Source: Pavona decussata
Taxonomy: Eukaryota
Reading direction: 5' to 3'
Length of the DNA: 64,000 nucleotides
Assembly: GCA_977016875.1 (NCBI GenBank)
Contig: CDRNST010000114.1
Coordinates: 2,046,001 to 2,110,000 of the forward strand
The position numbers were made by a program, and so were the translations under genes. Below, piece by piece: positions 10,157 through 42,597 of the stretch. The notes under the pieces were generated by a model, which saw only the letters and a list, made by a program, of their open reading frames with translations, ran no database searches and was not told the DNA's origin. The number at the start of each line of letters is the position of its first letter. The stretch's first letter is position 1.

Positions 10157-13100
10157 TTATGAAAATCCAAGGTTATCCCCGACGTTAGGCCCTGGTTTGT
10201 GTTTATTCTGCGCTTTTTCCTGTAACCTTTCAATATAATCCTTTAGTTGTGCAAGTAGTCGTTGGCCTTCATTTATGTCTATATTGACAACAGTAGCATC
10301 CCTGGTCATTTCGTGGGACTTAACTGCTTCTGTGAACAAATCAAAATTGGTAAACATGGTCAATTTAAGTAAAGGAAGCAAATAACAGCTCGATCCTAGT
10401 CTCTAGTTCAGTTAGAGCATCATATGTAGGGTGTTACGTTGGGTCTTGGGTTCAGTGGATAGATCATCCGACTAGTGTATGGAAGATCTTGGGTTTGGAT
10501 CTTGTGGGCGCTTATTTCTTTGTATTCCCATGCTCTTGAATCACTACCGGAGCCCATGATCCGGAACCTCTATCTTTCATACTAAGGATTGGAGTCAACC
10601 CTTTCCCTGAGTAGCTTATTTTAGTAAGGGTCTCAAGAAACCTTTGCAGCACCCACAGTTGAAATATCCAATCAAAGAAGTGCCAACTGTGGTCATTTCG
10701 TTGGGGTAGCTGCAAGTCAGTAAAATTCATCCATTACAAGATCCATCGTTACGGACCAAATTGTCATTACGTGATCACTTTCCATGAATCCCAAAGATAA
10801 GTGAAGCGAGACGTTTGGTATCAAGTAATATATCAAACCCGAGGAAGAGAGTTCCATTCGATTTCCAACCACCCAGAGTTGGGTTAATAAAAACGAGGCA
10901 CTGCCGAGTTTTCTTTTAACCAACTTTGAGGTGTTTGAAAATGAGATTAAACACTCTTTCGAGTGTTTCATATAGCTTTTCAAACCATTAATAATTCTTG
11001 GAGAAATTCGAGAGCAAAAATTCACCGAATTTTATGATAATTAAGCAGATCACATTCCCAAAGCTCCTTCGCGGTAGTGAATCCCTTTTTTTTCCTGAAT
11101 TACTTTAAATGAGTTTGACAATAGAAAATGCAAACCTGGATCATGCTCTTTTTGCGCCACTCTCTTTTTGTTAATGGTGTCCAACACTAGACCAGATACT
11201 AGCAGGAGTGTCAACACAGCAGACAAGGCATATATCACCTTGGAGATCTCTGGCGACGTAGTTAACAAGAAATCGCTTTGCGGAGCATGTTGTAGCTTGC
11301 TCTATTGAAGACAATGGGGAATAAGGTATCAACAATAATCCCTCCATGCTTACAAACTAAGGAACTTTCAATAAAACCAAACGACTTTACATTGTAAAAA
11401 AAAAAAAAAAAGAAAACAACAACAACAACAACAACAAAAGAAAATCAGAGACCAACATTACTTTCTATACTATACCATACGTATAACACTTACCATACTT
11501 TAAAAGTTGCATTGTAAAAAGTGACCGCTTAATAAACTTTAATTATTATAGCAACCACCTAAACTGCTTTCAACTGCAACTCTTTTTAGCTTTCAACTGC
11601 AACTCTTTTTTAACTATTTAATCTCTCATTCGTAGTTCATATGTATAAATATTTTCATGCATATATTTCCATCGTTACGTTTCTAGATGATCGCCTGGTC
11701 ATGGTTTAATGAAACGCAGAAATCACATGAATGAACCGCTCAATGAATCAAGAAATATAATAAAATGAAATGAATGCAATGCTCAAATCGAATGCTAGTC
11801 TATGCGGAAATCAATTGCTAGTCAAGAGATTAGCTCTGATTTTTCATTGCCGATGAAATGCATCAACCGATAACATCCAAAACCTCATGCTAGACTTAAT
11901 CCGATGGAGACGTTGTTGGTGTTTTCCCATCTCCTATTTTCCGGCTTCCTAAGTTAAATTCGTAAAGTAAATTGACGGAATATCGGGTTATGTGAAAACT
12001 TGCAAAATTCAAAAGGTAATAAAAATGAATAATAAATTATAAAACCTCCTTGTCTTTCTTTCTCACTCTCTACCTTTAAAGTGGATAAACAGGGACTCTC
12101 TGGTAGGTAATCCATCAAAACAATGTTATACTTGCTGTACTGTACGCTAGCTCAGAGCCGACAAGACTTACAACATACATAAAAAGAAAAAGAAGAAACA
12201 AACAGAAGCTAAATTTAAGCAGCTTTGGCGTGAGACACAAGGAGGCAAAGTAATTAATTATATAAATGGTTAAAAGTATAGATTAATAGCACCGCAGGTA
12301 GTTCGCTTTCCACTTTCGGCTTTATGCCGAATGGGGATAGTTTTACATTAGCGATGAAAAAAACCTTGTGTGATGTCGTCGATAAATACAGCAGAACTCG
12401 AAAGAAATGTCGCGTACTTTGAGAATTTCCTACACGAAGCGTCTCCGTCAAAGATGTAATTTTCATTCGCTCGTTGTCTTTCTATACAAAATCACTTGCT
12501 ATATGCATTCTAACGAAAGCTTTTCTGTAGAGTCGTGTTGCTCAAAAACGCTTCTTTTTAATATTACGCTTCAGTTTTGTCTCGCGGACAAAACTAAAAT
12601 GTACTGTGTTCTACTCTGAAAGAAATTAATTACTTAACCAATCACAACAAGCCAGCTTTCAGTCTGTGTTATTTTATCTGTTACACATGTCGTGTCCTGC
12701 GCATTGATAAGATCACAATTTTGAAAACCAACTTAGTTTGTATGCTGTGATATGAAATGTGGTACCTACCTTGTAAGAAGCAGTGATATCATGTACAGCT
12801 AAGTCTATGGATGGACGAATCACAGTCAAACAGTCAAAAAGGTTTTGAAGTTCCCTGGCAAATAAGACGCTGACTTTTTTTTGCACTTCCATCTCCATGA
12901 TAGTGCACAGAGTCGCAGCCTCGAACTCTAACTCATAAAAAAAAGCTGTGTACTGGTCCATGAGGATTCCATCCACTTCTCCTGATTTCACGGCTGATAT
13001 AATCTCTTCGATGGTGTTGTACGCTTGAGAAAATGAATTAAACATGTTGTTAGTATGGGATGGACTTTTTGCAGACAAAGGCCAAGGTACCCCCGAGTAG

Positions 13101-41600: not shown

Positions 41601-42597
41601 ATTGAACCATTTTATACAAAAGCGATCAAGAGCTCCATGTCAGAAGCTTACAAGTCAGAAAAAGAAATCACAATGGACAAACCATCTATCATATAAATGA
41701 ACACGGTTTAATGCTGATGTAGAATATTGACTGTTTTCGTTGCATTTGATACAACAGAAACCTTCTACACCTGGCACAAGCCTGTTTGATGTTTCCGCGC
41801 CCTTTGTTAAGTGGCTTCTTTACCGATCGCTTGGAGTACTGGGCGGATTACTTCTCATGGGAATGGTGTGGGACATTTTTACAAAAAGAAGAAAGGCTAA
41901 AAATAAAAACAATGTTGAGTTAGGTGAGCGATTTATAACATGTACGTCCTTTTCCCTGATCGCCTGTCTATACCCACTTTACGGGTTATTAGGGAAGGTG
42001 AACGACTGAACGAACCAAAAACAACATTGAAACACTCATCTTTGGCTGAAAGTGTTTTAATAGCATTTTTCGTATCTCAAGACTTCCACCCTCACATTTG
42101 CATAGTGTTTCCTTTGTCTATATTCTGTTGAAAAGCTGTTTAATGTTACAATTACAGTTACAATGGCAATTTATATAGCGCCAAAATCCAAAAGTTCTAA
42201 GGTGGCACTTCACAAAAGTGAGAAAAATTCATTACAGAAACAAAGGCCCCAAAAATATGTACAAAAATTGTTCAAACGTAAAAATTAACTACATATTAAT
42301 TAAATGTTCGTTTAAATAGAAACGTCTTTAACTTATTTAAAAAAATATCAACTGAATTACAGTTCCATAATTTAGGAGCACAGACAGAACACTCTGTCAC
42401 CATAACTCTGCTTTACAGTCTCAGTACATGTAGAGAAACTGGACGAGACGGCAATCGAAAGAGGTGCTAAGCAAAGTGACACTGAAGTTACCAGACAACT
42501 CCTTCGAGAAGTGAAAGAGCGGTTTGACAAGCTGGAAGCTATAATCTTTGAAGAATATGACTGTCCGGAACCCAAAGAATTGCAAGATGACCATTAA
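35626..42597 (+). CDS. GluR0-like ligand-gated ion channel B (paralogue of A), 490 aa
   Basis: Exons 35626-36156, 36641-36735, 37117-37282, 38175-38238, 39900-40171, 41758-41923, 42419-42597; 1473 nt, open, with the same intron positions and phases as A. Motifs: LEIAWISKPPYT; WPLLALTLVLAAIAGIIMWAL; GFWWSFISLTTVG|YGDKTPKS; IMADLTSALT; VKSGEVDGMLLDHY; TM LLYRSLGVLGGLLLMGMVW. Confidence 0.9.
39103..39801 (+). mobile_element. Internally deleted Harbinger element in intron 4 of channel B, retaining a Myb/MADF-like start
   Basis: TIR GCCGCGATTTACACGGTAC / GTACCGTGTAAATCGGCCC with TAA flanks. From 39341 it reads MANEVVIVGKPPSSTKAKTTFSEEETEKLISLWSEEA. Confidence 0.7.

Follow-up and report, generated by a model that had tools for sequence, protein, structure and literature searches.

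A 64,000-nucleotide stretch of the genome of the coral Pavona decussata (contig CDRNST010000114.1 of assembly GCA_977016875.1, forward-strand positions 2,046,001 to 2,110,000; hereafter the window, from whose first base all positions are counted) contains two genes, A and B, that are almost certainly subunits of the ionotropic glutamate receptor (iGluR) superfamily, combining a K+ pore with a clamshell binding domain like that of the prokaryotic receptor GluR0. Six-frame translation and direct reading of splice sites placed gene A on the minus strand at 10157 to 15820 (six exons, 1452 nucleotides when spliced, 483 codons plus stop) and gene B on the plus strand at 35626 to 42597 (seven exons, 1473 nucleotides, 490 codons plus stop). 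All 11 introns of the two genes have GT..AG ends, and both open reading frames (ORFs) are intact. Each predicted protein runs from a signal peptide through the first binding-domain segment (S1), a membrane helix (M1), a pore helix with TTVGYGD, a second membrane helix (M2), and the second binding-domain segment (S2) to a third transmembrane helix and a helical tail. The coordinates, reading frames, and domain order given in an initial annotation of the window were thereby recovered in full.

The pore sequence is FWWSFVSMTTVGYGDKTPKS in gene A and FWWSFISLTTVGYGDKTPKS in gene B. In both genes a phase-2 intron, intron 2, separates the second and third bases of the Gly codon in TVG/YGD, at 14201 to 14370 on the minus strand in gene A (junctions GG/gtacgt ... 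tatag/A) and at 36736 to 37116 on the plus strand in gene B (GG/gtaaga ... ctag/T). Because this codon is split, the filter is visible in no single ORF; across the intron it becomes FWWSFVSMTTVGYGD in gene A and FWWSFISLTTVGYGD in gene B. The interruption described in the initial annotation is thus present in both genes, and it recurs in a Stylophora gene and its cDNA and in 12 of 12 paralogous loci, where the YGD exon is preceded by an intron; in 8 of these 12, a matching WW...TTVG exon lies upstream within a 1.5-kb flank.

Around the filter, the wider K+-channel signature is kept, with WW in the pore helix, TTVGYGD, and then [KR].P..S...R. In an alignment of 59 sequences (alignment A1, comprising 42 family members and 17 bacterial GluR0-type proteins), residues W207, T215, G217, Y218, G219, and D220 are invariant, and a regular-expression search found TVGYGD in 150 of 150 sequences (148 family members plus A and B), a set chosen for T[VI]GYGD. 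The M2 exons match the Pfam model Ion_trans_2 at 2e-8 in gene A and 4e-8 in gene B. At the level of sequence, the pore of A and B carries every hallmark of a K+ filter, and the earlier description of an intact filter holds to that extent. M2 ends in FVAHITSVLT in A and IMADLTSALT in B, as first read, and neither the SYTANLAAF motif of animal iGluRs nor a Q/R/N-type pore is present. It had been proposed that SYTANLAAF was replaced; the motif does differ, but it is not unrelated, since the pattern A[NHD][IL]TS[AV]LT aligns as a GluR0-type, distant form of the same region and resembles bacterial FIATITSSLT.

Hydropathy profiles of both proteins show M1, M2, and one helix after S2. S1 starts about 25 to 35 residues past the Met in A and B, and homologues of 479 to 490 amino acids start at the same place; alignment with these homologues upheld the view that the two proteins are without an amino-terminal domain. 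Exon by exon, the genes match coral homologues with tblastn E values of 1e-8 to 1e-27, placing their exons in this family far beyond chance.

Exons and transcripts of the two genes

Gene A begins with an exon at 15308 to 15820 on the minus strand (amino acids 1 to 171), an ORF bounded by a GT donor at 15307 to 15306, that contains the start codon, a signal-like N terminus, the S1 lobe, and M1. A phmmer search of 1.84 billion representatives with this exon matched 104 family proteins, including full-length models of about 480 to 515 amino acids from Stylophora, Pocillopora, Montipora, and Nematostella. Compared with a contig of a related coral, in which the ORF is open as well, exon 1 has a ratio of nonsynonymous to synonymous substitution rates (dN/dS) of 0.29, which points to purifying selection. 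Exon 2 (14371 to 14465, minus strand), read directly from the sequence, encodes the M1-pore linker, the pore helix, and TTVG, stops after two bases of the Gly codon, and is 61 to 76% identical to coral homologues by tblastn. Exon 3 (14041 to 14200, minus strand) supplies YGDKTPKS, M2, and the start of the S2 linker, and in addition to Ion_trans_2 it matches the Pfam model Lig_chan at 3.6e-6. The S2 lobe, with a conserved Asp in ILMDQYTAF, lies in exon 4 (12770 to 13114, minus strand; tblastn E values of 1e-12 to 1e-15). Exon 5 (11136 to 11301, minus strand) carries the end of S2, a linker, and the third transmembrane helix, which appears as a hydropathy peak at amino acids 393 to 411, and exon 6 (10157 to 10329, minus strand), which aligns with homologue tails, carries the cytoplasmic helical tail and stop codon.

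Exon 4 of gene A covers what two exons, 4 and 5, encode separately in gene B and is longer by about eight residues, leaving A with one intron fewer than B. The phase-1 intron between exons 4 and 5 is shared by gene B and the Stylophora gene and has no counterpart in gene A, which also lacks the conserved NGT sequon. With a branch of 1.27 changes per column and at most 37% identity to any sampled protein, gene A looks like a case of intron loss on a fast-evolving branch.

RNA-library contigs at gene A are unspliced, 90 to 94% identical to and colinear with the genome, and derived from a related coral. They cover upstream DNA together with exon 1 and intron 1 at one end of the gene and intron 5 together with exon 6 at the other, and their joints lie in repeats. 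As these are the sole RNA contigs there, the splice junctions of gene A are predictions, and the contigs speak neither for nor against the splice model. Two stretches within introns 1 and 5 (14640 to 14970 and 10876 to 11069) showed summed contig depths in the thousands and irregular joints in coral metatranscriptome runs; they are probably fragments of high-copy transposable elements transcribed somewhere in the genome.

Gene B, all of whose features lie on the plus strand, opens with an exon at 35626 to 36156 (tblastn E values down to 1e-24) that encodes the start codon, signal peptide, S1 lobe with a retained Arg in SNRQY, and M1. Exon 2 (36641 to 36735), with the pore helix, TTVG, and a phase-2 end, is 87.5% identical to Acropora, Oculina, and Porites homologues, and exon 3 (37117 to 37282) continues with YGDKTPKS, M2, and the linker. 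S2 starts in exon 4 (38175 to 38238; VAVLNNGTEYQQ, with an N-glycosylation sequon; 67 to 76% identity by tblastn), and its lobe, with the conserved Asp in MLLDHYSAS, follows in exon 5 (39900 to 40171), which has six matches in its own genome, all on the same contig. The end of S2 and the third transmembrane helix (amino acids 400 to 418 by hydropathy) are in exon 6 (41758 to 41923), and the cytoplasmic helical tail and stop codon are in exon 7 (42419 to 42597), identified by alignment with homologues. Genes A and B are 36.5% identical, and gene B is 47 to 52% identical over its full length to RefSeq models of other corals.

A second B-type pair of terminal exons, encoding a third transmembrane helix and then a tail, is found at 53524 to 53683 and 54180 to 54347 on the plus strand, about 11.6 kb downstream of the pair that belongs to gene B. 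These exons are 62% and 43% identical to exons 6 and 7 of gene B, and the donor site of the first is GC instead of GT. The pair is partly degenerate and could represent alternative 3' ends or the remnant of a partial duplication.

Predicted fold and relation to known channels and receptors

Searches used single exons or database homologues, while the spliced A and B proteins served for the frame check, local alignment, and tree. Single exons of the binding domain gave no significant Pfam or PDB match, the best being 4ohn, an ABC substrate-binding protein, at an E value of 0.42 with gene A exon 4; because of these nonsignificant results, the clamshell was tested by fold on a homologue. An AlphaFold2 model was built from the 59-sequence alignment for the Acropora homologue P0133, which shares 47.5% identity with B and 33.9% with A. 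Its mean predicted local distance difference test score (pLDDT) was 88.5, with helices at residues 165 to 186, 198 to 214, and 226 to 260 and a further helix at 393 to 435. The extracellular halves of the modeled homologue form a type-II periplasmic-binding-protein clamshell, the fold anticipated in the initial annotation, and the structure they resemble most closely is the GluR0 ligand-binding core. For P0133 as a whole (479 residues), the top 50 Foldseek matches in the PDB were all chains of NMDA, AMPA, kainate, and delta receptors comprising the ligand-binding and transmembrane domains, aligned over 425 to 484 columns with E values of about 1e-13. In the ESM Atlas, the closest noncnidarian shapes were bacterial clusters with SBP_bac_3, Lig_chan, and Ion_trans_2, with template modeling scores of 0.57 to 0.59 by query and 0.66 to 0.73 by row over residues 35 to 380.

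Assembly of the pore was modeled with four copies of the P0133 pore module (residues 148 to 265). The complex-prediction score was 0.61, compared to 0.00 for the best of three controls, a result that may reflect memory of solved K+ channels; of the proteins solved as pairs of one chain, 21 of 30 attained the mark set for this score, compared to 0 of 23 solved as single chains. Across the four-copy runs, at least 86% of contacts agreed, partner pLDDT was at least 72, and the contacts included filter residues 214 to 220.

By sequence, the nearest noncnidarian relatives of the family are bacterial GluR0-type proteins of 345 to 380 amino acids, the 'group 1' channels of Ger et al. 2010 (PMC2950845). 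In BLASTP, cnidarian P0015 and bacterial P0167 are 27% identical over 295 colinear residues spanning S1, the pore, and S2 to its end (E value of 3e-31). The likeness to these bacterial channels, which combine SBP_bac_3, Lig_chan, and Ion_trans_2, lies in the split of S1 and S2 around M1-P-M2 and in the missing amino-terminal domain. The coral genes differ from them in having a eukaryotic signal peptide, introns, and no Pfam match to SBP_bac_3, and whereas the bacterial proteins, P0167 included, end after S2, the coral genes add the third transmembrane helix and a helical cytoplasmic tail of about 60 to 70 residues. The layout therefore joins a GluR0 core to an M4-like helix, lacks an amino-terminal domain, and is not the GluR0 architecture itself; the initial annotation's assignment to that architecture stands for the core, with its GluR0-like clamshell, and fails for the helix and tail that bacterial proteins lack.

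Full-length homologues score 46 to 63 bits against Ion_trans_2 and 23 to 38 bits against Lig_chan (cut-off of 30.8), which falls below cut-off on single exons, and bacterial GluR0-type members reach 55 to 61 bits for Lig_chan and 61 to 81 bits for SBP_bac_3. Sequence matches in the PDB were to K+ channels at 1e-8, in the pore only, and to GluN1 at 2e-7. The weak Lig_chan scores, the lack of SBP_bac_3 in cnidarian members, and the closer bacterial sequences argue against a recent derivation of the family from animal iGluRs. With those receptors (AMPA, kainate, NMDA, delta, and epsilon), the family shares Lig_chan scores near the cut-off and, in the model, the fold of the ligand-binding and transmembrane domains with an M4-like helix. 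It differs from them in lacking the amino-terminal domain, in having a K+ filter in place of the Q/R/N pore, and in carrying SYTANLAAF as a distant variant, and its similarity to them is far weaker than that to bacterial proteins (about 33 bits for GluN1 versus 110 bits). The metazoan iGluR phylogeny of PMC6307864 does not include the family, and the word 'potassium' does not occur in its text.

The bdelloid receptor AvGluR1, as PMC12332018 describes it, has the full domain architecture of a eukaryotic iGluR, including the amino-terminal domain that the coral genes do not have. Compared by description only, the two share membership in the eukaryotic iGluR superfamily, the TxVGYG K+ signature, and the iGluR-type topology of three transmembrane helices. 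Canonical K+ channels (KvAP, KcsA, Kv, K2P, and TOK), which provide the top PDB sequence matches, have in common with the family a pore helix with WW, TTVGYGD, and two flanking helices, but by homology to GluR0 and iGluRs the pore of the family would be inverted in the membrane and inserted into an extracellular binding domain, and the family is without a voltage sensor or cytoplasmic gating ring.

A cnidarian multigene family

The initial annotation presented A and B as two unusual genes, a view that gave way to a multigene family spanning Cnidaria. A search with P0100 returned 237 clusters at E values of 1e-8 or lower, and all named matches among the 120 listed were cnidarian, from Hydra, Hydractinia, Rhopilema, Xenia, Dendronephthya, Nematostella, Actinia, and Actinostola and from the stony corals Acropora, Montipora, Porites, Pocillopora, Stylophora, and Oculina. 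In its own 602-Mb genome, the M2 exon of gene A (exon 3) has at least 53 matches, nearly all starting from query residue 1, and six members of the A/B subclade lie within about 370 kb of one contig. The clustering on the A/B contig has a parallel in Stylophora pistillata (LSMT01000022.1, L016:2774-20881), where three paralogues of 484, 489, and 490 amino acids follow one another head to tail in a stretch of 18 kb.

Splicing was observed directly for a Stylophora relative, in which a 1755-nucleotide cDNA contig with an uninterrupted ORF of 489 amino acids aligns in seven blocks, at 97 to 100% identity, to a 4.8-kb gene, with the second junction inside the Gly codon of the filter. It is for this relative only, and not for A or B, that spliced mRNA was found. 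Two intronless copies in ENA assembly ERZ26222911 (L013:4733-6157 and L014:10001-11485; 474 and 494 amino acids, each a single ORF) are on contigs with many short spurious ORFs and with THAP, P-element-like transposase, reverse-transcriptase, and integrase genes, a context that assigns them to a transposon-rich eukaryote; in the tree, P0156 falls in a 15-row clade beside clades with Rhopilema genes, and P0089 falls in a 42-row subfamily.

Source labels for family models are 'uncharacterized protein' or 'Potassium channel domain-containing protein', and some models are misnamed as Kv channels. Misleading automatic names in the set P0105, P0145, P0283, P0294, and P0163 are 'Potassium voltage-gated channel subfamily D member 3', 'subfamily F member 1', 'subfamily A member 10', 'glutamate [NMDA] receptor subunit 1-like', and 'contactin-3-like'. 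Some subfamilies carry N-terminal modules, such as CUB and Ig in P0233 and TSP1 and FN3 in P0045, and precomputed Pfam lists give EGF for P0242 and TSP1, FN3, and Ig-like modules for P0163. In the ESM Atlas, a single cnidarian cluster of FN3 fusions comprises 181 members. A literature search, with subscription journals mostly uncovered, found no paper linking GluR0 or a K+ filter to a cnidarian family and none describing the family itself, in keeping with the earlier characterization of it as little studied; the family is apparently undescribed.

The initial annotation had looked to a phylogeny for placement of these genes. In a FastTree analysis of 135 family rows and 17 bacterial GluR0-type rows, the two groups, to which the unrooted tree was confined, were separated with a support of 99. 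Genes A and B fall in a scleractinian clade of 22 rows (support of 97) with a Nematostella gene as sister. The 42-row subfamily broadly tracks cnidarian phylogeny through hydrozoans, scyphozoans, octocorals, anemones, and stony corals, so the family is older than the cnidarian crown group. With no eukaryotic iGluR outgroup, the tree does not decide between bacterial transfer and retention.

Proposed function and alternatives

The best-supported mechanism for these proteins is ligand gating of a K+-selective pore, which we infer and consider fairly probable, if well short of assured. Each subunit would present a two-lobed extracellular binding domain (S1 and S2) interrupted by an inverted K+-channel pore module and followed by a third transmembrane helix and a cytoplasmic helix, and four subunits would, by homology, form the pore. 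Closing of the clamshell on a small extracellular ligand would pull the S1-M1 and M2-S2 linkers and open the pore, and an open K+ pore would drive the cell to the K+ equilibrium potential, making the receptor inhibitory.

Several observations weigh against this proposal. The fold was predicted for a homologue rather than for A or B themselves, and a literature search found no electrophysiology or ligand-binding data for any family member. No spliced RNA for gene A was present among contigs from four RNA runs, and none was seen for gene B, the RNA contigs having been compared with gene A only. Of the two models named for searching in the initial annotation, Ion_trans_2 and SBP_bac_3, only the former was found; neither SBP_bac_3 nor Lig_chan-Glu_bd had a Pfam match in any cnidarian member scanned. 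AvGluR1 is reportedly only weakly K+ selective, and if so, TxVGYG alone need not give strong K+ selectivity. Fusion of some paralogues to CUB/Ig, FN3/TSP1, or EGF modules hints at adhesion-type roles for part of the family.

The ligand pocket adds to these points. In this fold class, an Asp in S2 holds the amino group of the ligand and an Arg in S1 holds the alpha-carboxylate. With pocket positions placed by sequence alignment and an anchor motif rather than by coordinates, A, B, and 141 of 148 sampled family members retain the Asp. The Arg, kept in 15 of 17 bacterial GluR0-type proteins, is present in B and in 30 of the 148 cnidarian members, mostly from the scleractinian subclade of gene B, and is replaced by Glu in A; five residues upstream, most members have Gly or Glu in place of the Thr. 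Gene B retains the Arg/Asp pair used for amino acids, and gene A retains the Asp alone. The glutamate-receptor-type ligand domain originally proposed is thus upheld in its clamshell fold and near-universal Asp, but not in its Arg, which is absent from A and about 80% of the sampled family. Given this loss, the ligands are probably not all amino acids, and they probably differ among paralogues. The pattern recalls insect ionotropic receptors (IRs), likewise a large, fast-diversifying family in which canonical ligand-contact residues are often lost.

The missing pocket residues also feed an alternative that we think unlikely, in which the proteins are K+ channels whose clamshell is a structural or regulatory ectodomain that binds ions, proteins, or nothing, leaving the pore as a leak or under some other form of gating. 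This would concern mostly gene A and the Arg-less members, as the alpha-carboxylate Arg is missing from A and 118 of 148 members, the upstream Thr is replaced too, no SBP_bac_3 signal is detected by Pfam, and gene A sits on a long branch. It is harder still to credit that the family consists of receptors or adhesion molecules with a pore that is nonselective or normally silent, as has long been debated for delta receptors. The N-terminal modules found in some subfamilies are typical of cell-surface recognition, and AvGluR1 would offer a precedent for weak selectivity despite the signature. However, the K+-channel pore signature is kept in its entirety, beyond TxVGYG, and the filter residues are invariant in alignment A1. 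The lineages that carry this signature diverged more than 500 Myr ago, and its conservation across them argues for selection on ion conduction. In addition, GluR0, with the same filter, is K+ selective (Chen et al. 1999, as cited in PMC12332018).

There is very little likelihood that one or both genes are decaying duplicates or artifacts of gene prediction. The divergence of gene A, its loss of an intron, the Arg, and the NGT sequon, the lack of spliced RNA for it in the contigs surveyed, and the spare, partly degenerate terminal pair downstream of gene B would all fit such a reading. Set against these are ORFs that are complete over six and seven exons with canonical splice sites and neither stops nor frameshifts, an exon 1 of gene A with a dN/dS of 0.29 that is open in a related coral, and full-length identity of gene B to RefSeq models. 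On the strength of the intact ORFs, the splice sites, and the dN/dS value, a pseudogene reading of A and B was rejected.

How the family arose can be sketched only tentatively, and the following scenario is one that we regard as possible but doubtful. A GluR0-type gene may have entered, or been retained only in, the cnidarian stem, with an M4-like helix gained independently of classical iGluRs, and the products may serve as K+-efflux receptors for inhibitory transmitters, for chemoreception, or for both, with diversification of ligands like that of IRs. If this were so, an animal with neurons would possess a class of ligand-gated K+ channels, and iGluR origins would have a living intermediate in this family.

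The prevailing view is that fast inhibition in animals depends mainly on chloride channels, and to our knowledge, ligand-gated K+-selective ionotropic receptors are essentially without precedent in animals with nervous systems. If the proposed gating and selectivity are correct, these proteins could be compact chemogenetic silencers. The family, which numbers dozens of copies per genome and is conserved in Hydra, jellyfish, and corals alike, would give cnidarians a different route to inhibit cells or sense chemicals. Its combination of a GluR0-like core with a third transmembrane helix that otherwise marks eukaryotic iGluRs bears on how K+ pores and bacterial binding proteins became glutamate receptors.

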